Below, piece by piece: positions 3,567 to 54,153 of a stretch of DNA of 64,000 bases (its first letter is position 1; each line of letters begins with the position of its first letter). The notes beneath the pieces are model-generated. The model was not told the DNA's origin. It did no database searches and was given only the letters and a program-made list of their open reading frames with translations. A program made the position numbers and the translations under genes. Origin of the DNA: Antechinus flavipes. Lineage: Eukaryota. The stretch is taken from the NCBI RefSeq assembly GCF_016432865.1, contig NC_067398.1:117490001-117554000 (forward strand), written 5' to 3'.

Positions 3567-16392
<12,826 letters not shown>

Positions 16393-17800: not shown

Positions 17801-17871
17801 CTTAAGAATTGATTGGTTTTTTTTGTTTGTTTGTTTGTTTGTTTGTTTTTTTGTTTGTTTGTTTTTTTGCC

Positions 17872-18022
17872 TTTTTTAATGGTGATGCTGAGCTTCAGTG
17901 AATGCTACTATAAAAATAGAATTTACCTTTTTTCATCAAGTTTTGGGTTTGGGTTTTTTTTTTTTTAATGGTGATGCTGAGTTTTAGTGAATGCTACTAT
18001 AAAAATAGAATTTGCCTTTTTT
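17872..18022. repeat. ~62-bp direct duplication, 89-bp period
   Basis: ttttttaatggtgatgctgag...gaatgctactataaaaatagaattt(a/g)cctttttt at 17872 and 17961. Confidence 0.93.
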
Positions 18023-18250
18023 TTCCAGCAAGTGGAAGTGGTAGTGGAAATTCAATAATAAAGTCATGTCCTAGACAACCTACCTTGTAGATCATATATA
18101 CGTGAAGAACTCCTTAAAAGATAGCTAATCCACTATTCCCCTCTCTCCCTTGTACCAGTGGTAGTGTATCCCACTCATTACCCTACTCAGATAAGGTCAG
18201 ACCACAGCATTGCCTGAATTGGGGGAGGGGAAGGCGGGGGTCCCCGTCTC

Positions 18251-18256
18251 TTTATT
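18251..18256 (-). terminator. Polyadenylation signal of CDIPT-opposite-strand gene
   Basis: AATAAA on minus strand 150 nt after predicted stop codon. Confidence 0.7.
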
Positions 18257-18405
18257 AGTCTCTGGCTCCTGATGGTGTCATGGCCGGGCTGTAGGGAGTG
18301 AAGAAGAATGTCTTTGGGAGAGTCTTTGGGTCTTGCGGATGATGACACTCATAGCCAGGAGTCCACCCCTAGGATTTTTTCAGATGAATTTTGAAGAGTG
18401 GGATC

Positions 18406-18417
18406 TCAAGCCACATT
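18406..18417 (-). CDS. CDIPT-opposite gene last coding exon
   Basis: ctctcctctcctccttttcttccctcag|NVA-TGA, then AATAAA. Confidence 0.68.
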   Translation of the reverse strand, partial: NVA

Positions 18418-20752
18418 CTGAGGGAAGAAAAGGAGGAGAGGAGAGATGTGAACTCCTCCTCCCTTTCCTAAATGGTCCTTTCTTGGGTCAGGAGTTGAAG
18501 GAGAACATCTGCTTCTAAAGCTTCTGAGGGAAGTATTCTGTCCCTCTTAATATTTTTGTGACCTGCTGTCCCTTGGTCCCCACAAACCTGCCCCAACCTC
18601 CAAAGCATCCCTACAGAATCTTACTGGTAGAGGGTCTTACAGGTCATCTGGGTTAACATCCAACCACGGAGAAATCTCACCTACAACCTCTTAGAGAGAT
18701 GGTCATCAAGTCTTTGCTTCAACACTTCTAGTAACCCAGAGCTTTTTGAGGCAGCTGGTGAGCAGTTCTGATGGAATATCTTTCCTAAATGGAAATCTCC
18801 TTCCCTGTCACTTCCTTCCATTGAGTCTAGTTCTTCTCTCTGGAGTAAATACAGATTACAGCTATTGCCTCTTCCACACGATAACACTTCAAATCTATGA
18901 AGTCAGGTTTCACATCTTTCCCAAGTCTTCTCTCTTCCAAGCTAGGTAGACTTAGTTCCTTCAAAAGCTACATATAAGAATGATTTCCAGGCTCATCCTC
19001 ATGCTAATAATTACCTTTCTTTGGGTGAATTCCATCTTGTCATTGTACCTTTGACTCTACCTTAAAATGTTGCAGCCACCGTTCAAAAATACCTTGATAC
19101 TTCCTTGTTCTTTCCTCAAGGGATAGGAAGAGAGGCCTTCTGGGATTGTAGTCGACCTCCGAGTATTCCATCGGGGAATCAAATACATGCTTCCACCCAG
19201 AGTGTCCTCTTGTCGTACAGTCTCTACCTAGGAAGGGACAGAGATTAATGCAAAACTCTATTCCCAGGTGCTAGTCAGGAATAGAATAAGGGAACTGGTT
19301 CTTTCTCTCTCACCTGCTTATGTTGGGATAGGTCTTTCTCTTTCGACTTCAGCAATTTAACTTTCTCATCTTTAAAATCTTCAACCTGAAGCATTACAAG
19401 GAAGAAGAAGGGCTTGGTTTGTTTCTGGGATTTGGAATATAATCTTTCTTATTCTGAGATAAGGGAATTCCTGTAGTTTCCTCCCTCAAGTGAGAAAGCA
19501 TAAGAATCTTCTCTCTGTCACATTCCTTTCTACAATCCCTAGCTCTCAATAGGGCCCATCGGGTTGGAAGAAAATCTTATCACATACCATCTCTCTGGAT
19601 GGCAGGAGATGAGTCTTGTTTCTGGTCCTGTTTCTGTCAGAACTACAAAGAAGAAGAAAGGATGTGGATAGGAAGAAAATGAATTCCATAGTAAAAATGA
19701 ATTCCATGGTGGAGTGCAGCCCAGATACTCCCTCTTCAAAGTTCCTTCCCATCTAAAGTTCTCCATAACATCTCCTCCCAAAAGTGAATTCTCATTTCCT
19801 ACTTCCCCTTCGCCCCTGTAAAATATAGAAAACTACTGGATTTGAAATATGAAGACTTGGGTTCAACACTTGGTTCTGACACTTTCTAAACTTGTGAGCA
19901 AGTTACTTAGTTTTTTTTTTTTTTGTTATTTCTAAGTGAGGAAGATAACACTTGTACTCACAAGTTACTTAGCTTTTTTTTTATTATTATCTGTAAAATG
20001 GGGAAAATAATATTTGCACTTCACAGCCCTACAAGGTTGTAATGAATAAAACAAATTGTAAAAGCCCCATATAACAATATTATTGTTTCTCTTTCTTCAA
20101 TTCCCCATTGCCCTAAGGTGTGATCTTTCTCCTCAGGGATTCTCACCGAGTATCTGTGCCCTTGGTCCGAGTGGTTGGCGGCACTGAAAACATAGGCCCT
20201 AGTTAGAAAGAGTGCCTCTCTCTGTGACCAAAAAGGGAAAAAGGGGTTGGAATAACTAGTCACAGGGAGTGGGTAGTTAAGATCAAGAATACGGAAATGA
20301 AACACAGATGCTTGTAAGGTTGTATGACGTTAGATGGGAATGGCACCTAAAGGGGGGGCCTGCCAGGGTTCAAAACGGGTTCCTAGGGAGTAGACTTTGG
20401 GGCTGGAGTTCAGGGCACTGTATTAGAGCAGGGATCACCGTGTCGGGACATCTGAGTTCCCTGGTCCAGTTTTTTCAATTCCTTGGGCAGGTCAGGCCCT
20501 ATTGGATATTGGGCTCCCATCAGGGCCTCGTTGGTAAGTTCTGTGCTGATACGGACCAAATACTCCTCAGATCTGGTTAACACCTTGCAGGAAGGATGAG
20601 AGTTGAGGGGACCAGGGTCAGATGGTCAATTTTGGGGGAGAAAAGTGCCCCTTTCCCTGCAATCCTCCCACTGCACTCACCGCTGGTGTAGGGGAATTAT
20701 GTGAATTTAGAGTGCCCTTTTTCTCCTGAGGCCCTGAAGGACTGGACGCCAT
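18406..20752 (-). CDS. Uncharacterised 180-aa protein, CDIPT opposite-strand gene (positional ortholog of human CDIPTOSP / mouse Cdiptos)
   Basis: Seven exons 20752-20681, 20583-20439, 20198-20147, 19642-19588, 19385-19314, 19227-19093, 18417-18406, all with AG/GT sites and matching phases 0,1,2,0,0,0; 543-nt ORF, Kozak gggATGG, AATAAA downstream, X-box upstream. Confidence 0.8.
18640..19010. mobile_element. Ancient CR1/L3-type LINE remnant (approximate)
   Basis: Resembles degenerate CR1 3' end (ccattgagtctagttcttctctctgga...ctcttccaagcta...ttccttcaa). Confidence 0.45.
19093..19227 (-). CDS. CDIPT-opposite gene coding exon 6
   Basis: ctctgtcccttcctag|VETVRQEDTLGGSMYLIPRWNTRRSTTIPEGLSSYPLRKEQGSIK|gtattt. 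Confidence 0.75.
19314..19385 (-). CDS. CDIPT-opposite gene coding exon 5
   Basis: cttcttccttgtaatgcttcag|VEDFKDEKVKLLKSKEKDLSQHKQ|gtgaga; only phase 0 is open. Confidence 0.8.
19588..19642 (-). CDS. CDIPT-opposite gene coding exon 4
   Basis: ttcttcttctttgtag|SDRNRTRNKTHLLPSREM|gtatgt. Confidence 0.75.
20147..20198 (-). CDS. CDIPT-opposite gene coding exon 3
   Basis: ctctttctaactag|(G)PMFSVPPTTRTKGTDT(R)|gtgaga. Confidence 0.75.
20439..20583 (-). CDS. CDIPT-opposite gene coding exon 2
   Basis: tccttcctgcaag|VLTRSEEYLVRISTELTNEALMGAQYPIGPDLPKELKKLDQGTQMSRH G|gtgatc. Confidence 0.72.
20681..20752 (-). CDS. CDIPT-opposite gene coding exon 1
   Basis: ctctctctacctgttcccag|GGG ATG; MASSPSGPQEKKGTLNSHNSPTPA|gtgagt. 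Confidence 0.8.
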
Positions 20753-21099
20753 CCCCTGGGAACAGGTAGAGAGAGGTGGGCTATTAAGTTGGAAAGTTAC
20801 CCCACTTTTTTTTTCCTTTAGAGGGTATGGGCCAAGGATGGCCTGAAACTATCCCATGATGTTATTTTCAGTCGTACGGAAAAACCACCTGCTGGTTTCC
20901 TTTCTCCAGCAGATTAACACACAAACTTTAGGGCACCCAGCCCATCATTAGTCATTTCTCCACTTTCCCTCACACCAGTCTGTCCCCCTCCCTTTCCTCA
21001 ATTTGGTCCCTTCAGTTGATTCCCTCCTCCTCCACCCCCTAGTCCTCAGGGTCCTTTCCCAAACCCAAAGGTTCAGTTTCCCATTTTTCGGACCTGATG

Positions 21100-22420
21100 T
21101 TGGATAGAAATTGCCTATGGCCCGGGAGGGGAGAGACGGGGAGGTCTTTCTAGTAGTCCCGCCGTTGCTGTTGCTATGGTTACCGGTCGCAGAGGGAAGG
21201 GAGGATGGAAGGGGGAGGGGAAGAGTGGCACGGGGAGGTTGCCCCGGGAACCACGCAGGCGGAGGGAGCTCGGCGGCGCGTTGCTAGGAGACAACCCCTT
21301 TGAATTCTAGAAGTCAAATCCGAAGTCATCTTTTTTTTTTTTCCTTCTTTTTTTCCCCGGCATCCCTTTCTTCTCCGCTCAAGCATCATCTGCAGTAGAA
21401 TTACTCAGCTTGCAGGGCGGGGAGAATTATTTATCCTACTAATAGGCTTTAATATTGAAAGAGTAGTATCCTCCCAGGGCCAGGGGGCGATCTCTAGAGT
21501 CAGCTCCTTCTAGTCTAAAGCTTCTTCCTGACGCTCTAGCTGCCACCTTGACGTCCTAGAGTAGCTGAGCTCAAAAGAGGATGAGTCAGAGTTGGAGGAA
21601 AGGGATGATTTAAGACTGAGCCAAATGCTTCATCCGGTGGGTTCTTGAAGTGTAGGTTACGTGAAATAAGTCTCTCGTTCCTTTTAAAGAAAAAAAATCC
21701 TCACAAAAATTAAAACTAGTTATTAGTATTCTTATCTAACTTCTCTTCGGTACCTTTTTCCGTTCTGAATTTACAATTCGTTCCTAGTCTCTGTGCGCGC
21801 TCTGAGCTCCCCTCCCCTCCCCGCTCTGAACTTGGTTCAAGCCGTCGGAGAGCAGAGGAGGAAAGGAAAGGAAAAGGAAGAGGGCCGTTCTTAAAGGGAT
21901 CGGAGCCACTTTTTGGCCTCCAATTTTGCGTCAGCACGGGCGGAAGAGCAGATTTCTGGGATTCAGGGGGCCTCTCCCTCGCACAGCTGGTGCTGTGACG
22001 ACTGGAAGAAAAGTGGAGAGGAAGGACTTTGAATCCATCCCTGGGCCCCGAGCGAGCGGCCTAAGGGGACTTGCATCCCTGCAGGAGGAAGGCCGGCTGG
22101 GCGCCGGAAACCGCACAACTGGACCGGCTGATGCCTGGGACGGCAGGGGGGACTTGCACATCTGGGTCCCGCCCGGGGCGGAGGCCGCGGGGTCCACTGC
22201 GACCCCGGAGCTGCTGATGCGCCGGGGAGAAAGAAGCGGCTGCACAAGGGCGGCACCGGGGTGTCTCTGGGGGCAGAGGAAAGGGGCGGAGCGGCAACCG
22301 GGGACTCGGTAGCCCTAGCCCGGGGCTTGCTTAGCTGGCTAGGTGGGTGCCTGACACGGGAGCGTCCGGGGATCGCTCCCCATCCCCGTTTCTAGAGGCC
22401 GTCCATCTCCACCCCGCCGA
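21100..22420. promoter_or_regulatory. CpG-rich bidirectional promoter CDIPT / opposite-strand gene
   Basis: High CpG density between divergent genes; ETS-like cggaag at ~21941. Confidence 0.7.
21170..21183 (-). promoter_or_regulatory. RFX X-box
   Basis: GTAACCATAGCAAC on minus strand fits GTHNYY-AT-RRNAAC. Confidence 0.7.
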
Positions 22421-22421
22421 G

Positions 22422-22464
22422 ATGCCGGAAGAAAACATCTTTCTGTTCGTGCCCAATCTCATCG
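22422..22464 (+). CDS. CDIPT: CDIPT exon 1
   Basis: MPEENIFLFVPNLI G|gtgagt. Confidence 0.96.
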
Positions 22465-25448
22465 GTGAGTCTGTCGGACCCTGACCACGAGCCCCGGCCG
22501 GGTTCCCAGGGAGGATCCCCACGGTTTGGGTTGTCGCACCTGCTCTGCCCCGCACTTGCGTGACCTTGGGCTAGTGGCTTCCCATCTCCGATCCTCATTT
22601 CCCCGTCCCGTGTCTTTGTGGGGGTTGGTGGGGCTCCTCTGTCCATGAGCCTTCTCCCGGCCCCATTTATTCACCCCTGTTCTAGTGCTCTGAAGCCTCT
22701 CTCCCCTCGTCCTCAGGCTATGCTCGGATCGTCTTCGCCCTCGTTTCCTTCTACTTCATGCCCAGCTGCCCGTTCACTGCCTCCTCCTTCTACTTGCTTA
22801 GTGGGCTCTTGGACGCCTTCGACGGACATGCAGCCAGGGCCCTGAACCAAGGTGACCGAATGCCTAGCGTGCCTCTCTCCCTGCCCCCCTTCCCCGGCTT
22901 CCCTGCCTCCCCCCGCCCCCACTTCGCCCCTCCACGACCACCCTCCCCGGACTCAGGACTTGGGTCTTCGAAGGGCTCTGCTTTTGGATGCCACCATCTC
23001 TCCCCGGGACCGAACCAGAAGGAATAGCTTGGCCCCAGTGCTAGTGCCAAGGACTGAAGCAGGGAGGACTGAGCTAATTATTAGCTGTTGGGAAGAGCTC
23101 CCTGGTTGTTAGATTGCAAAACCCAGAATTAAGTGAACAAGAGAGGTTTGGAGCGTTTTCCCCTGGGGAATCTTCTATGGATTTGTCAAAGTTTGGGGTC
23201 ACAGACTGGTGTCACGAGGTATCTCAAAAGCATTTGCGGTCAAGGGGCAAAGTTTATTGACTTGAAATGTCATTACAAAAACGGGCTTGGAATTCCCAAA
23301 AGAAATTTGCAGCAAAACAGAAGCAGGGAGACTCGTTTGTCCAGTCTATATCGTAGATGTGCTAATTCTATGGCTCCTAGGTAGGAAGAAGTGGTTTCCA
23401 AAGTTTGGCTCTTGGTTGGCTAGATTGTTACTGGCATTGAGGAGTGGTCTGTTCACTGTTGTCTCATGAGTTTGATCTGTGGGGATGATCCTGAGGCCAG
23501 AAGCTATCTGACTTAAGGAGTGGTCAGAATCTGACAGATTGGGCGGGGGAGTTTCCTGAGACAGACTCCAAAGCCAGAAGATCTAGAATCACTGACTTAT
23601 TGCTAGAACAAAAGCTCCCCCTAAAATCAGGGGACCACAAAATCATACTACATCAAGTTCATCGATTAGTCAATAGCCATTGAGAGAGCTGTTCCTGAAG
23701 TCTGGAGGCTTGTAGATAGCTGTAGGTCAGTGTCTTTTTCGGGGTTTTGGATTATTTGATTTAGGTTGGGGAGATTTTATCCACATCTGGCTTTGTGATG
23801 TGTGATTCGGTTTATCCTGATTTTACCTCACAGTTTGGATTGGGTTCAGGGAATATTTGGGACATAGAATTGTAAGGATTTAGACTAAGAACAGTATTTC
23901 TAATCCAATGTGCTCGTTTGCATATGATAGAGACTCAGAATACATTGCAAAGGTCATACCTAGCTTGAAATCTAGTTTTAACTTCCCCATGATGGAATAT
24001 TCCCTACCCACCCCTTACACTTTTTAATCTTGACCCTCTTCTCTTAGATCAGTATTTCAGTTGATTGGCAGTTTCTGACTCGTAATCTTCTCTGGGCCCA
24101 GGAGAGAATGAACATCCTTAATTTTTCAGTTCCTGCATATCTGCGGGTTTGGAGCAATGTTGGTCATGCTGACTCTGGCCAGGGGTCCATTCACTCTCAC
24201 TATTTTCAAGCTAAACTTCTGGCTCTCTTATTTCTACTTTAATTTAGGAACTCGCTTTGGGGCAATGCTGGACATGCTGACTGATCGATGTTCCACCATG
24301 TGTTTGCTGGTAAACCTAGCTCTGCTCTACCCTTGGGCCACCCTGCTCTTCCAGCTCAGCATGAGTCTGGATGTTGCCAGCCATTGGCTGCACCTACACA
24401 GGTTACAACCACCACCCCATTGGGCTGAGAAATTATAGCCTTGGGTTTGGCCCATCATTGACTGAGTTACTTCAAGAGGGGTCCTAATGATCACCTTTCA
24501 ATGAGGGTGGAAAGAGGAAGTCCTAGAGATACTGGGGAATGGGCCTTTCTTCTTAGAGGCAAGAGAGAATCCATGGGTTAGTGGCTGATGATAACAAGAG
24601 AAATATGGGTGGGGGGAGTGGGGCAAGGTAGGAATTTGAGTGGAGAGGTAATACTTTATATTCTCATATCTTTCCTTCCAGCTCCGTGGTCCGTGGCAGT
24701 GAGAGCCACAAAACTATTGACCTAACAGGGAATCCCATCCTTCGACTCTACTATACGTCCCGGGTGAGTCCCAATACAGGTCTTACCCCTAGACTACACT
24801 TAGAGTGTCCAGATAGCTTGCCTCATTGCCAAGTATCCACTTCCTTTCTCTGAAGTCTTAACAGATTTTGGAATGAATATGAGTGAGCATATAAGTGTGT
24901 GTGTGTGTGTGTGTGTGTGAAAGAGAGAGACAGACACTGAAATTGTGAGCCCACTGTTCAAATTAGAACTATGTGTTTTACCTTCTTCTTGCAGCCAGTG
25001 CTATTCATCATGTGTGCTGGGAATGAATTTTTCTACTGTCTGCTTTACTTGCTCTATTTCTCCGAGGGACCATTAGGTATGACCCACGGGGGCCAGGAGG
25101 CAGATCCGAGGACAAGATGTGGGGAGTGGGAGCCAGAGGGAGGTTTGGGCATGTCGGGGTGGCAGGTGGAGATTGGAAGGATAACTGATTTGACTAGATA
25201 CTGATACTGAGCTTCTTAAGTGAATTCACCTGCATTCATTTTCTCCTCTTCTTTGTTTCTTTTCCCTCTCTGTATTGGACTTTGTTTTCTCCCTTTTTGC
25301 AGTGGGTTCAGTGGGTCTGTTCCGACTGGGACTCTGGATCTCCGCTCCTATTGCTTTTCTCAAGTCCCTCATCAGTGTCATCCACTTGGTCACTGCTGCA
25401 CGCAACATGGCTGCCCTGGATGCTGCTGACCGTGCCAAGAAGGAATAA
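22422..25448 (+). CDS. CDIPT: CDIPT CDP-diacylglycerol--inositol 3-phosphatidyltransferase (PI synthase), 213 aa
   Basis: Exons 22422-22464, 22717-22851, 24248-24401, 24682-24763, 24995-25076, 25303-25448 = 642 nt; CDP-alcohol phosphotransferase motif DAFDGHAARALNQGTRFGAMLDMLTD. Confidence 0.98.
22717..22851 (+). CDS. CDIPT: CDIPT exon 2
   Basis: YARIVFALVSFYFMP...DAFDGHAARALNQ. Confidence 0.97.
24248..24401 (+). CDS. CDIPT: CDIPT exon 3
   Basis: TRFGAMLDMLTDRCSTM...SHWLHLH. Confidence 0.97.
24682..24763 (+). CDS. CDIPT: CDIPT exon 4
   Basis: SVVRGSESHKTIDLTGNPILRLYYTSR. Confidence 0.97.
24893..24918. repeat. (TG)n microsatellite
   Basis: direct observation. Confidence 0.9.
24995..25076 (+). 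CDS. CDIPT: CDIPT exon 5
   Basis: PVLFIMCAGNEFFYCLLYLLYFSEGPL. Confidence 0.97.
25303..25448 (+). CDS. CDIPT: CDIPT exon 6
   Basis: GSVGLFRLGLWISAPIAFLKS...AADRAKKE-TAA. Confidence 0.97.
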
Positions 25449-47700: not shown

Positions 47701-50700
47701 TAATAGATTTGGAAAATATCATTTGTCGGGCCATTAATAAAAATCCAGCACAATGGTGTTGAGGACCAGACAGATGTGGGAGATAGGGAGATTTAGACAT
47801 AGGTAAAAAGATAGGAATTAAAAAATAAGATGTAGGAATACAACCTGGAATGAACTCTAGCAGAATGCTTTCTCTAGGGTACTGTTGTTCTTAGTGTTTG
47901 GGAAACATGCTGATCCCATGAGGAAAAATGAATGTATAACATGAATGAGTACAAATCCATGAATATTAGAACAGTTAGAAGAGTGGATGAAATTTATTAA
48001 ATTTTTTCCCCTACTTTATTAAATTTAAAGTACAACACTTTGGTTAAAAAACAAACAAAAAATTTTACAAGTATAAAACTGGGATATGAGTAGACAAAAA
48101 CTCATGGAAAGGAATGAGGTTTTTAAAGTAAACATGTTATATAGCCAAGTCAAGTCAATAAGCATTCATTAAGTACTTATTATGTGCCAGGCATTGTGCT
48201 AGAGATACAAAGGGCTGGTTACTGTTTTTTATGCTTGAATAGGACCAAAATGGCACCATTTTTTGTTTTGAATAGGATAGTGTGAGGGTCAAAAATACTC
48301 AGTTTACAACAAAAGATACTTAGGCAGAGCCATTTGAGATGCTCCCTTTTTGCAGGGGCTTAATTTTATAGTGCTTGATACACAGAAGATACAGCTGAGG
48401 CAAAGTTAAAATTCAGAGTCTCATTGGTTAATAGACCTGTAGCTTGCCCATTCAGGGGAACTTTCAGTTCATGGGTACAACTGGTGACGAGAGGATTCCA
48501 AAATTGGCCAAGCTGATGGTCACTCACTGGCACCCTGTTTAAGACAGTGTTAGCTGTTGGCCAGAACACCCATAGGCCTGTTTCTCCAGCAAAGTGATAA
48601 TAAGATTGAGGGACCATCAGAAATAGAATGTTCTATATCACTGACTCATCTCTATCAGGCCAAAGTAGATTGCCTACTCAGCAGAAAGAGTGGTGGTCCT
48701 ATAATCAAGGAAGTGAACTTTGTAACAAGTCATTGAACTTAAGAATCTTAAAGCCCATTACAAGAAAGAATCTATCCTACCTTATCTAATCATCTCCAAA
48801 ATAAAGATATGTAAATATCTATTAACACTAGTTGATTATACTGACTGAATATAAATTAATAGAAAAGCATATCACTAAATAATTACTATGGAATCATACC
48901 AAACTGAATAACTGATCAAAAATAAGCTAGGGGTCTAAGTCTACAGGGTCTAAGTCATTATTTCCTACAATAGTCACCTCCCACATTAGGCAGACTAGGA
49001 TTAGGTTAAGTGGAGCAGGCCATTTTTAAGGGCACCTTTTCTAGCCCTTTCCTCGCCAGAAGCAGAACAAGGTGGCTGCTCAGACTCCCAGGGATTCCAA
49101 ATCCCCCTGCTGCTTCAACACAGTGAGAAGAGAACTCTAGGTCCTGGGCCTCTTGTGGACAGGGCCTGATTACTTCCAGTGCATTCCCACCTGCTGATTC
49201 ATCACCACAGGACTTTGAGGCAGGCAAAAAGGATAAAATGGTGAAGTCTTTGACTTGAACATAATTGGATTTAAGGGCCTTCATGGCCCTTGGGAAAAAC
49301 TGTTCTCATCTGACCATTCCACCAAGGATGTCTTCCTGTGTCTGGGTTAGACACCCCTAAACTGCTGAGGGATTTAAGGCCCCTCAGGTACCCTCAGCCT
49401 GATTTAGCCCATCCGCCGACACTGGCTGCTGTACAAACCGCAGCCTCTCGTGGCCACAGGTGGGAAATGGATGGCAGGTGAACACCAAAGGTGGAAAGCG
49501 ACTCTGAAAGGGCTCAGCAGCTCTCACATAGATGTGTTAGTCTCCTCTGACCACTTATCCACCCACATACAACTATAAGCAAAATGAAATATATTCTCTG
49601 CCCTCAAGGAATTTCTACACCAAGGAAAGACAACACATATAAGAAAACTGAAAAAGAAGGGGAATGGGGAAAGGGAAAGTAAAGACAGCAGAAAGTCTGG
49701 ATAGCCAGGAATGGAGCCCAATGGCTAGTCTGGGAGCCTTTTTTTAAATCGGAGGTACCTGGAGGAACCAGCCAATCAGAGGGGCTGTGGTACAGCATGA
49801 ACTTCTAGGGTGGGAAGGCTGCTATAGACATGATGGAGGAGTGGAACCCGAGAAGAATGTCTGAGAAACAGTTGGAAATAGCAACTGTAGCTCGGTAAGA
49901 GAGATTGGGGCTGGATATATATCATCAGGTGAAGATGGAAACATATATTTTTGGACACAGTTAGGATGGGAATTGCTTTTAGCTATACATATGTCTTATA
50001 AGTAATTTTTTTCCCAATTTTTTTTTCCAGTACAGATGATAGGAGGGGAAAATGGGAGGGAGACTGGAATGGAATTAAAAAGAAGGCCAGAGAGAGAAGA
50101 TGAGAATATCCTTGAAACATACATGAAAAACTAATTTTCTGTTCAGTATAAAAAATAAAATTAGACGAAAAAATACTCAGAGGAGACATGATTGCTGCTT
50201 TTGAGCACTTTAAGGGCTGACATGTAGACAAGGGATTGGCTTTCGTTTATTTAGCCACAGAGGGAAGAACTGGGAATAAAAGGGTAATAGTTACAGGGAG
50301 GTAGGTTTTGATATTAAACAAGATTTCCTTTTTTTTTTTAATAACTTTTTATTGACAGAACCCATGCCAGGGTAATTTTTTACAACATTATCCCTTGAAC
50401 TCATTTCTGTTCCGATTTTTCCCTTCCCTCCCTCCATCCCCTCCCCCAGATGGCAAGCAGTCCTATACATGTTAAATAGGTTTCAGTATATCCTAGATAC
50501 AATATATGTGTGCAGAACTGAACAGTTCTCTTATTACACAGGGAGAATTGGATTCAGAAGGTATAAATAACTTGGCAAGAAAAACAAAAATGCAAGCAGT
50601 TTATATTCATTTCCCAGTGTTAAACAAGATTTCTAAAAAGTCTTAATTCACTCTTAAGCTTCAGTTTTCTAAAAATGTACTAAGTATTTTGGAAATCCTA

Positions 50701-52963: not shown

Positions 52964-54153
52964 GGTGACTTCAGAGTCAAGATGGCCGGAATTAGGAGTG
53001 GTTAATACAGGATCTCTGGTGTGGGGAGAAAGAATACAAATGAATGATAAACTGTACATATTTTTTGATCCAGCAGTGTCTCTCCTGGATACTGTCTGTA
53101 TCCCAAAAGATCACCAAAAGTGAAAATAACCCTCACATGACAGTATGTTTGTAAGAATTCAAAGTACCATAGGGACCATTATCTTTTAATATTACAAGGG
53201 CCATCATGTGGAAGAGGCAAAGATTTGACTTGTTTTGTTTGGCTCCAAAGGAAGGAATGAGGAGCCACAGCCACGTTCAGGAAAGCATATTTTAGTTTTA
53301 AGTAAAAACTCCTTAGCAATTAAGAATTGCTCAAAAGAGGAATGGATTATTGCAGGAGGTAGGTGACTCTCCTTCAGTGCAATTCTTCCAGCTGATGACT
53401 ATTGGTTGGGGATGTTGTCCAGGAAATTCCTGTTCAGGTATGGATTAGATGACCACTGACTCCTAATTAGCCAAAGACTTAAACTCTCCCAAGCCTACTC
53501 TTAGCTAGTCCAATTTCAAGTTTTTAAAATAATAAAGTATGCAAAATTCTTCTCTACTGTTTTATTTCATGGAGGTGATCTTGGTTCTTGGTTCTGCCAA
53601 TAAACCTTAAGTTCTGGAAAGCTCTGCTATACTAGAAAAGCTTCCTGTACAGTTTTGGTGACAGACTGAGTACCAAAGTAGCTACTACATATACGAAGGT
53701 TCATCACCAGCTGGTTGCCCACTAAGTGACAAGATTCTCTGGCAAGTCAACCTCAAAAGAGAAAATAAACATTCTTGTGTGGCTGCCTCACATAAATACA
53801 CTTATAGACGAGTGATAAAAAAGGGGGCAGGAGCTGCTAAGAAACACAACTTTTAAACTTAAAAAGATGAACTCAAGAAGATATTCTAAATGTGGGATTT
53901 TGTGTCCAATGGCAATGACTTGAAATACTTTTGGTTAAGCTGACTCATATTATATAGTGATAGTCTCACAAATGAAAACAAAAGTATTAAGCTAATGGGA
54001 AGGATAGCAAATATATTCTCGGAAAGACAAACGAATCAAAGAGATTGTTTCACTGGGTGCCCCAAAACAACTAAAAATAAAAATTTCATGGGATACTTGG
54101 TTATATCATCTTGTAGATGCTCTTAACGAGGATAAACAAAAAAACATTTAGAG

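Follow-up and report, generated by a model that had tools for sequence, protein, structure and literature searches.

LOC127556323 of Antechinus flavipes is very probably the orthologue of the mammalian gene Cdiptos (T-ENOL)

The window, by which we mean the whole 64,000-nt stretch of DNA analysed, is 100% identical to Antechinus flavipes CM028217.1, and on its minus strand, at 20752-18251, lies the gene that RefSeq names LOC127556323. The annotated product, P0001 (224 aa, titled 'uncharacterized protein LOC127556323 [Antechinus flavipes]'), maps to the genomic DNA as seven GT-AG exons, beginning at the same ATG as the gene model of an earlier, sequence-only reading of this DNA. That reading had presented the gene as hidden; the same assembly annotates it, the locus fetched with P0001 (L001) being 100% identical to the window across 22,072 nt, and NCBI models of the gene are present in nearly every sequenced marsupial. 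LOC127556323 stands head-to-head with CDIPT and is flanked by CDIPT and SEZ6L2, and the resulting order, MVP-CDIPT-gene-SEZ6L2, agrees with the proposal of an intact protein-coding gene placed and oriented like human CDIPTOSP and mouse Cdiptos. CDP-OH_P_transf on one side of the gene and CUB/Sushi on the other were found in Antechinus, platypus, Mus pahari and Bos; CDIPT was the only neighbour called at the Dromiciops locus, and zero neighbours were called at the echidna locus. The exons are as follows (^ marks a splice border).

20681..20755, minus strand: coding exon 1, acceptor cccag^GGG, ATG at 20752, 72 coding nt
20439..20583, minus strand: coding exon 2, 145 nt, encoding the conserved helix (residues 28-48) and the DQGTQMSRH motif
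20147..20183, minus strand: coding exon 3, 37 nt, annotated acceptor ttttcag^TG
19588..19642, minus strand: coding exon 4, 55 nt, matching Dromiciops at 55/55 nt, supplying SDRNRTRNKTHLLPS
19314..19385, minus strand: coding exon 5, 72 nt; marsupials and monotremes have it, placentals lack it
19093..19227, minus strand: coding exon 6, 135 nt, the fastest-evolving part; marsupials and monotremes have it, placentals lack it
18681..18839, minus strand: 159-nt exon, the annotated 52-aa C-terminus, within intron 6 of the sequence-only model
18251..18417, minus strand: putative ancestral terminal exon, coding NVA, TGA, then 3' UTR up to AATAAA at 18256-18251

All seven minus-strand exons of the earlier model (20752-20681, 20583-20439, 20198-20147, 19642-19588, 19385-19314, 19227-19093 and 18417-18406) are there, each with its AG acceptor and GT donor, and they join into the 543-nt ORF with exactly the 180-aa translation given for it. 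Compared with the annotated model, the borders of exons 1, 2, 4, 5 and 6 were exact, whereas the acceptor of exon 3 was not, and the annotated product ends in another exon (18839-18681). For exon 3, put at 52 nt, orthologue mapping gives 37 nt with the acceptor at 20183, 15 nt downstream of the one proposed; the exon is 37 nt also in Dromiciops, platypus and echidna and 34 nt in mouse and cow, and the five residues that the 20198 acceptor adds (GPMFS) are missing from nearly all orthologues. Judged from these comparisons, the 20198 acceptor, with its 15 extra in-frame nt, would at best be a minor alternative. Several finer points of the earlier model held up: the exon-2 donor (CACG^gtga), which had been called the weakest junction, is kept in 6/6 species, and the AATAAA at 18256-18251, 150 nt past the TGA, is conserved in Dromiciops. 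The (c/a)ag^gggATGG start context of exon 1 is conserved in therians.

A protein similarity search with the 180-aa peptide returned 80 matches, those with names all mammalian, with E values of 1e-72 to 1e-102 for marsupial proteins, ~1e-37 for monotreme and ~1e-17 for placental ones; proteins titled 'putative protein T-ENOL' matched at E 1e-17 to 1e-12 with 50-60% identity. Agreement of this order greatly exceeds what chance would give. An exhaustive profile search of 1.84 billion proteins gave 42 matches, of which all named ones checked were mammalian, and the family profile reached the mouse cluster 'CDIP transferase, opposite strand' (NP_001349161.1), bearing out the suggested homology to mouse Cdiptos. 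Intact annotated copies occur in lemurs, a loris and the New World monkey Aotus. Judging by these matches, the family is conserved across the three mammalian subclasses and apparently does not occur outside mammals. LOC127556323, which by exon mapping is transcribed divergently from CDIPT and has seven coding exons, is in our best explanation very probably the already annotated A. flavipes orthologue of this mammal-specific gene (Cdiptos, 'putative protein T-ENOL', human CDIPTOSP).

Coding exons 1-4 match in length and phase across 6/6 mapped species. Exon lengths are 72/145/37/55/72/135 in Antechinus, 72/145/37/55/72/126 in Dromiciops, 84/148/37/55/72/138 in platypus, 84/148/37/55/72/132 in echidna, 81/151/34/58/36 in Mus pahari and 90/145/34/58/36 in Bos. 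The protein kept in marsupials and monotremes is a long form (~175-225 aa); that kept in placentals is a short one of ~119 aa, encoded by exons 1-4 and a short terminal exon. The gene had been described as ancestral to therians; the full 7-exon form occurs also in platypus and echidna, which dates it to at least the mammalian ancestor. Its fate in placentals is neither plain retention nor plain loss, since they have a shortened form without coding exons 5-6. Traces of exons 5-6 were sought by tblastn and blastn in the introns of Mus pahari and Bos, and nothing convincing was found. The longer form at the Antechinus locus is probably the ancestral one.

In the 159-nt exon the stop TAG is the final codon and is followed by gtgaga, and it is therefore probably a cassette exon. 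Its protein is identical to that of Dromiciops at 48/52 aa (92%), and differences between the two species fall at 5/32 synonymous vs 4/124 non-synonymous sites (pN/pS ~0.2). The exon probably derives from an old dispersed repeat: for it and its flanks nhmmer gave only two weak, diverged candidate copies, both elsewhere in the window (reciprocal E ~2.5e-3; ~115 kb searched), no further copies were found by blastn, and its tail (...LEVLKQRLDDHL...) and downstream sequence resemble what we take to be a CR1/L3-type LINE 3' end. The 12-nt last coding piece of the earlier model belongs to the exon that ends the Dromiciops, wombat, wallaby and opossum models, and by this comparison is the ancestral terminal exon. 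Its AATAAA is the sole poly(A) signal between 18700 and 18000, and its TGA aligns with CGA in Dromiciops. Antechinus would have two C-termini, one of a 224-aa protein that includes the putatively repeat-derived cassette and one of a 175-aa protein that skips it and stops at the lineage-specific TGA; the 175-aa form ending in NVA is quite plausible as a second isoform. A weak match (E 0.008) downstream of the Bos stop resembles the tail of the Dromiciops terminal exon, which suggests only that the terminal exons are orthologous.

The sequence-only reading had foreseen a mostly disordered product with one candidate helix and no recognisable domain. AlphaFold2 (mean pLDDT 56, pTM 0.23) places a helix at that position, residues 28-48, with a central block (residues 31-40) averaging pLDDT 90, and a second helix at 206-223, within the 159-nt cassette exon. 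Pfam scans of five family members gave zero families even at E <=1, a profile comparison with all PDB chain sequences gave zero matches at E <=10, and the look-alikes in the ESM Atlas were the T-ENOL cluster alone (score 0.77). In these models and alignments the conserved parts are the predicted alpha-helix 28-48, the DQGTQ(M/I)S motif and a basic motif rich in Thr and Arg (GTDTRSDRNRTRNKTHLLP), the rest being predicted as disordered; the near-invariant basic motif GTDTRSDRNRTRNKTHLLPS is encoded by exons 3 and 4 jointly. An AKAP-type amphipathic helix, compared by eye, did not fit. Nor was a one-sided conserved face found, the whole helix being conserved (conservation moment 0.06), so that a simple amphipathic docking helix is not demonstrated. 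The protein may be a small disordered adaptor that binds partners through its helix and basic linear motif. Literature searches on Cdiptos, T-ENOL, CDIPT-AS1 and CDIPT with RFX or X-box turned up gene lists and a single CTCF-insulator study but nothing functional, and a partner, localisation or phenotype was not found there for any orthologue.

Upstream of the coding exons we distinguish the following features, based on a promoter alignment.

21305..21312, no strand assigned: palindromic octamer TTCTAGAA, invariant in 6/6 mammals aligned
21280..21295, minus strand: X-box-like site 1 (GTTGTCTCCTAGCAAC, 4-nt spacer)
21238..21251, minus strand: X-box site 2 (GTTCCCGGGGCAAC), conserved in Dromiciops, platypus and echidna; Bos has a recognisable version, Mus a degenerate one
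21170..21183, minus strand: X-box site 3 (GTAACCATAGCAAC, full RFX consensus)
21094..21169 (5' end nominal), minus strand: putative non-coding first exon, donor CATCAG^GT conserved, no ATG inside

Both the donor at 21094, conserved in marsupials and monotremes, and the X-box at 21183-21170 had been pointed out from the sequence alone, and the latter proved real and conserved. Site 3 reads the same (CCATAGCAACAGCAA) in marsupials and monotremes, and neither of the two placentals has it. Sites 2 and 3 align across the two marsupials and the two monotremes and lie at most 150 nt upstream of the conserved CAG^GT donor; site 1 is conserved in part, among therians only, its half-site CTAGCAAC being kept in marsupials and Mus with one base different in Bos. 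A loose X-box pattern is not enriched across the window (9 found vs 6.5 expected), so positional conservation is the sole support for the sites. These conserved X-boxes upstream of the first-exon donor suggest RFX control. RFX factors may drive the promoter through the sites shared by marsupials and monotremes, in which case the gene would be expressed in ciliated and/or spermatogenic cells.

Selection was assessed in six species (Antechinus, Dromiciops, platypus, echidna, Mus pahari and Bos), leaving out Sarcophilus, Monodelphis, Petaurus, wallaby, wombat and bilby. The dN/dS ratio was 0.30 for Antechinus-Dromiciops (95% bootstrap interval 0.16-0.54), 0.37 for platypus-echidna, 0.22 for Mus-Bos and 0.28 for Antechinus-platypus. 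Between marsupials and monotremes it was 0.26-0.28 in core exons 2-4 and 0.23-0.29 in extension exons 5-6 (each Fisher p <2e-4). The substitution pattern shows purifying selection on the encoded protein in all three groups, marsupials, monotremes and placentals alike.

The same pattern already contradicts the idea that the CDIPT promoter gives rise here to a divergent non-coding transcript whose ORF was kept by chance or by RNA-level constraint, which we regard as extremely improbable. The 100% nucleotide identity of exon 4 to Dromiciops and the low dS of exons 2-4 (0.11 vs 0.44 in exons 5-6) do hint at nucleotide-level constraint, and human CDIPTOSP is named a 'pseudogene', with many lncRNA isoforms catalogued (PMC11211608). 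However, the frame is intact in every species examined, over ~180 million years; exon length changes between species are multiples of three, or compensating (37+55 = 34+58); synonymous sites are near saturation between marsupials and monotremes while the protein is conserved; and dN/dS, which had been proposed as a check of coding status, is well below 1 (0.22-0.37) in three independent lineages, with bootstrap intervals <1. A further alternative concerns which protein the gene makes. That the main product is exactly the proposed 180-aa protein, with a 52-nt exon 3 and the ending NVA, seems to us improbable. Its GT-AG chain is valid and its frame open, its terminal exon and AATAAA are strongly conserved with Dromiciops, the Dromiciops, wombat, wallaby and opossum models end in the same terminal exon, and PMFS is present in the wombat model P0003. 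Yet the wombat PMFS sits in an intron-retention-like insert, exon 3 is 37 or 34 nt in all mapped orthologues, and a ctaac branch-point-like element lies 3-7 nt upstream of the proposed acceptor, compared with ~20 nt for the annotated one; moreover, the annotated model of this assembly has the 159-nt exon, whose coding sequence is itself constrained.

As for the promoter, the X-boxes may instead serve CDIPT, or reflect RFX1/RFX7-type binding of a general kind at a bidirectional promoter that both genes share; they would then be uninformative on cilia or testis expression of this gene. We consider this possible, if on the unlikely side. The two genes are head-to-head, the X-box pattern lacks window-wide enrichment, the sites are only partly kept in placentals though the gene persists (site 3 missing, site 2 degenerate in mouse), and CTCF, by insulating enhancers, controls Cdiptos in mouse ES cells (bioRxiv 10.1101/2025.05.26.656183). 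On the other hand, the sites lie 75-200 nt upstream of the gene's own first-exon donor and are separated from the CDIPT start codon by ~1.1-1.25 kb that include an AT-rich stretch, and two of them are footprint-conserved from marsupials to monotremes.

Reading the raw sequence rebuilt a real multi-exon gene almost base-perfectly, and the novelty claimed for it disappeared once the annotation was looked up; as judged from sequence comparison, the gene call is correct but already known, and the evolutionary detail added here is modest. So is the residual interest, which lies in a mammal-wide uncharacterised family, in the clinically important 16p11.2 interval and in the pseudogene label in humans. 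We take human CDIPTOSP to be the former CDIPT-AS1 and to lie in that interval. Only tentatively do we propose that an ancestral 7-exon Cdiptos/T-ENOL (~200 aa) was under a tandem X-box (RFX) promoter as part of a ciliary/spermatid programme, that placentals lost two of its coding exons and that, as the sequence-only reading had suggested, the human lineage lost the gene; of this last step the literature bears out only the human name 'pseudogene'. If this were true, the human gene would be a silent casualty inside the 16p11.2 copy-number-variant interval, and the full-length protein would be open to study only in marsupials and monotremes. The conserved X-box promoter offers a testable lead to Cdiptos/T-ENOL biology.

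The locus can be compared with several known systems. With its two weak candidate copies in the window, the 159-nt exon would resemble exonised repeats that supply alternative C-termini, but differs from most of them in keeping 92% protein identity to Dromiciops and a pN/pS of ~0.2. Like ciliary and spermiogenic RFX/X-box genes, the gene has several RFX-consensus motifs within ~200 nt of its presumed start, two of them conserved between marsupials and monotremes; in contrast to such genes, its protein showed no similarity to known ciliary proteins in the Pfam, PDB and ESM Atlas searches, and the motifs are weaker in placentals. Human CDIPTOSP has the same position and orientation according to a literature table (PMC11211608), but is catalogued as a pseudogene/lncRNA, whereas the Antechinus gene is intact and constrained. 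Mouse Cdiptos (NP_001349161.1, 117 aa) and placental T-ENOL share with the Antechinus gene the slot head-to-head with CDIPT and upstream of SEZ6L2, the first four coding exons and their phases, and purifying selection; residues 1-105 are 50-58% identical, and the helix and the basic motif do not vary. The marsupial and monotreme protein differs from them in its longer tails and in the extra coding exons 5 and 6, which add 69 residues in Antechinus.

The sequence-only reading, which had assembled seven minus-strand exons opposite CDIPT into a 180-aa open reading frame, was essentially right, with two corrections: the acceptor of exon 3 and an alternative 3' exon. A search with the 180-aa peptide returned 80 database proteins, all mammalian, the top match being 'uncharacterized protein LOC127556323 [Antechinus flavipes]' (P0001, 224 aa, 97% identity). 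The locus that encodes P0001 (L001; 22,072 nt, assembly GCA_016432865.2, CM028217.1) contains MVP, CDIPT (CDP-OH_P_transf), LOC127556323 and SEZ6L2 (CUB/Sushi). Because L001 is 100% identical to window positions 8681-30752, the gene, which had been presented as hidden, is already part of the annotation; it also belongs to a named family (Cdiptos/T-ENOL) and is thus already known. Mapping L001 to the window places the neighbouring genes as follows.

22422-25448, plus strand: CDIPT coding sequence
near 16392, plus strand: end of SEZ6L2
beyond 29324, minus strand: MVP

The window contains a single run of N, at 4461-4592 (132 bases). Off-diagonal blastn matches also revealed two neighbouring copies of ~73 nt, 92% identical (17861-17933 and 17953-18022), just downstream of the LOC127556323 poly(A) site.

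Extraction of the seven proposed segments from the minus strand of 18000-21500 confirmed the chain, each segment being preceded by a pyrimidine tract and AG and followed by GT. The joined 543-nt frame yields a peptide identical to the one originally reported and ends in a TGA at 18408-18406.

20752-20681, minus strand: proposed exon 1
20583-20439, minus strand: proposed exon 2
20198-20147, minus strand: proposed exon 3
19642-19588, minus strand: proposed exon 4
19385-19314, minus strand: proposed exon 5
19227-19093, minus strand: proposed exon 6
18417-18406, minus strand: proposed exon 7

We then placed six annotated proteins on their own genomic loci by exact spliced search, which gave one solution per protein.

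Coding exon lengths (nt) from the exact spliced search
Antechinus: 72, 145, 37, 55, 72, 135, 159
Dromiciops: 72, 145, 37, 55, 72, 126, 84
Platypus: 84, 148, 37, 55, 72, 138, 96
Echidna: 84, 148, 37, 55, 72, 132, 102
Mus pahari: 81, 151, 34, 58, 36
Bos: 90, 145, 34, 58, 36

Of the proposed exons, five were exact, while the exon-3 acceptor was wrong and the alternative 3' exon had been missed. Spliced mapping sets the true start of exon 3 at 20183, with acceptor ggcctatgttttcag|TG; the acceptor chosen originally lies 15 nt upstream and inserts GPMFS, which is missing from nearly all orthologues. A ctaac element lies a few bases before that upstream acceptor and is suitably spaced to serve the annotated one as its branch point. 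The exon-2 donor (CACG|gtga), singled out as the weakest junction, is kept in all six species mapped. NCBI models of wombat (P0003), bilby (P0011) and koala (X2, P0010) orthologues contain in-frame insertions precisely where exons meet (following exon 2 in wombat and exon 1 in bilby); these look like intron read-through rather than genuine coding sequence, and exon 5 is skipped in the bilby and Sarcophilus NCBI models. Intron 3 contains an A-rich segment (19830-20060, minus strand) with two occurrences of 'aaaaaaa(g)ctaagtaacttg', ~60 nt apart, in sequence that by eye looks SINE-like.

Selection on the coding sequence was assessed as dN/dS by the Nei-Gojobori method on protein-guided codon alignments. 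We obtained values of 0.30 for Antechinus-Dromiciops over exons 1-6 (bootstrap 95% 0.16-0.54), 0.37 for platypus-echidna, 0.22 for Mus pahari-Bos and 0.25-0.31 between mammalian subclasses. For marsupials versus monotremes, dN/dS was 0.26-0.28 in exons 2-4 and 0.23-0.29 in exons 5-6 (Fisher p 5e-6 to 2e-4). The reading frame is unbroken in every species mapped, with shifts in exon length that are either multiples of three or mutually compensating (37+55 = 34+58). Judged from these sequence comparisons, the gene is protein-coding and intact, as had been proposed, since neither frame disruption nor dN/dS near 1, both sought across six species, was seen. Exon 4 (19588-19642) is identical at 55/55 nt between Antechinus and Dromiciops, against 81-83% in the adjoining introns, and dS is 0.11 over exons 2-4 versus 0.44 over exons 5-6; exons 2-4 may be under synonymous-site constraint, at the level of splicing or RNA, or the pattern may be coincidental, given how short the region is.

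The annotated Antechinus product joins exon 6 to the 159-nt exon at 18839-18681, which could be read either as a cassette or as a separate terminal exon. Its stop, TAG, is the last codon of the exon and is followed at once by gtgaga, as is also the case in Dromiciops. We found no poly(A) signal for this exon ahead of the common AATAAA at 18256-18251, which had been identified correctly and is the sole AATAAA between 18700 and 18000. From the position of the TAG before gtgaga, and from this common AATAAA being the first poly(A) signal, we infer that 18839-18681 is a cassette exon; because of the established 50-nt rule for nonsense-mediated decay, a stop at its last codon would be predicted to escape decay. 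The Dromiciops counterpart has an open frame with 48/52 residues identical, and 5 synonymous differences in 32 sites against 4 non-synonymous in 124 point to coding constraint, although these numbers are small. The cassette-encoded tail is also annotated in Sarcophilus, Petaurus, koala and bilby.

The last exon of the original chain is the ancestral terminal exon, with ~88% identity to the Dromiciops terminal exon, reaching identical GAGACTAATAAAGAGACGGGGACCCC. The Antechinus TGA is aligned with a Dromiciops CGA (Arg), so that a cassette-skipping Antechinus product would end in NVA, 23 residues short of that of Dromiciops. Two diverged copies of the cassette region lie on the plus strand (50164-50330 and 53101-53559; reciprocal nhmmer E ~2.5e-3), and nhmmer iteration found no further copies. 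These look like an old dispersed repeat, perhaps the 3' end of a CR1/L3-like LINE, and the cassette exon is probably repeat-derived; the ...LEVLKQRLDDHL tail that it encodes and the downstream sequence are presumably similar to CR1/L3-type LINE 3' ends. In the Bos locus (L006), the Dromiciops terminal-exon tail GWTPGCQHHHP has a weak match (E 0.008) at 6893-6925, ~110 nt past the stop. The comparison suggests that the 36-nt last exon of placentals corresponds, in truncated form, to the ancestral terminal exon.

Alignment across six species of the ~300 nt that precede the first coding exon reveals a footprint-like block with the following elements.

21305-21312: palindromic octamer TTCTAGAA, invariant in 6/6 mammals, just upstream of the X-box cluster
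21280-21295: X-box-like site 1; CTAGCAAC half-site kept in marsupials and Mus, one base off in Bos
21238-21251: X-box site 2, kept in marsupials and monotremes, recognisable in Bos, degenerate in Mus
21170-21183: X-box site 3, full RFX consensus; CCATAGCAACAGCAA identical in marsupials and monotremes, missing in both placentals
within the block: conserved GACCTCCCCGTCTCTCC
21094: donor CATCAG|GT, end of the putative non-coding first exon of the sequence-only reading

The shape of TTCTAGAA is akin to an HSF-type inverted pair. The putative first-exon interval contains no ATG, which would make the annotated start codon the earliest ATG of the transcript. The X-box sites lie 75-200 nt from the donor at 21094 and 1.1-1.25 kb from the CDIPT start codon, with an AT-rich stretch between, and on these distances we assign them to LOC127556323. 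A loose X-box motif is not enriched across the window (9 found versus 6.5 expected), and thus the case for these sites is built on their conserved positions. Regulation by RFX, with the expression in ciliated or spermatogenic cells that would follow from it, is a reasonable if tentative hypothesis. The one regulatory study of the gene that we found reports that mouse Cdiptos rises on removal of a CTCF insulator in ES cells (bioRxiv 10.1101/2025.05.26.656183).

The protein matched no Pfam family and has no relatives among solved structures, and its only Atlas look-alike was T-ENOL itself. AlphaFold2 with the family alignment (mean pLDDT 56, pTM 0.23) gave a confident helix at 28-48 (mean pLDDT 90 for block 31-40) and a second predicted helix at 206-223 in the cassette-encoded tail, the remainder being unstructured. 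Columns with the same residue in at least 90% of the 28 aligned sequences (P0001 numbering), the majority of them fully invariant, fall in the helix region (S29 E30 E31 L33 S37 E39 L40 E43 A44 L45 A48), the DQGTQ(M/I)S motif (D64 G66 T67 Q68 S70) and the basic motif region (T79 G81 T82 D83 T84 R85 S86 D87 N89 R90 T91 R92 K94 H96 L97 L98 P99). The helix is conserved on every side, and segment 49-100 has a net charge of +6 with abundant Thr, Ser and Pro. The product is predicted to be a small disordered adaptor that would act via the helix and the basic linear motif.

Among the 80 peptide matches, marsupials show 50-97% identity and both monotremes ~50%, and many placental matches are named 'putative protein T-ENOL'. 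A profile search with 28 family members against 1.84 billion representative proteins retrieved 42 proteins; the 20 match clusters looked up were mammalian in every case with a source name (one was an assembly contig), and included mouse 'CDIP transferase, opposite strand' (NP_001349161.1), lemurs and the platyrrhine Aotus. Since all named matches of both searches are mammalian, the family appears, on present annotation, to be mammal-specific and older than the monotreme split; orthologues in both monotremes make the gene older than the therian origin first suggested. Exons 5 and 6 are common to marsupials and monotremes and constrained, and no relics of them were found in the Mus pahari and Bos intron. 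The simplest reading would be that the ancestral form was long and lost length in the placental stem. For the human locus, the label 'pseudogene' is confirmed as nomenclature only (PMC11211608).

What stands of the original interpretation is a constrained protein-coding orthologue of Cdiptos, neither hidden nor therian-specific. To this known family our analysis makes modest additions: the long ancestral architecture and the constraint on its extra exons, a lineage-specific terminal-exon stop, a constrained and probably repeat-derived cassette, and a conserved X-box cluster.
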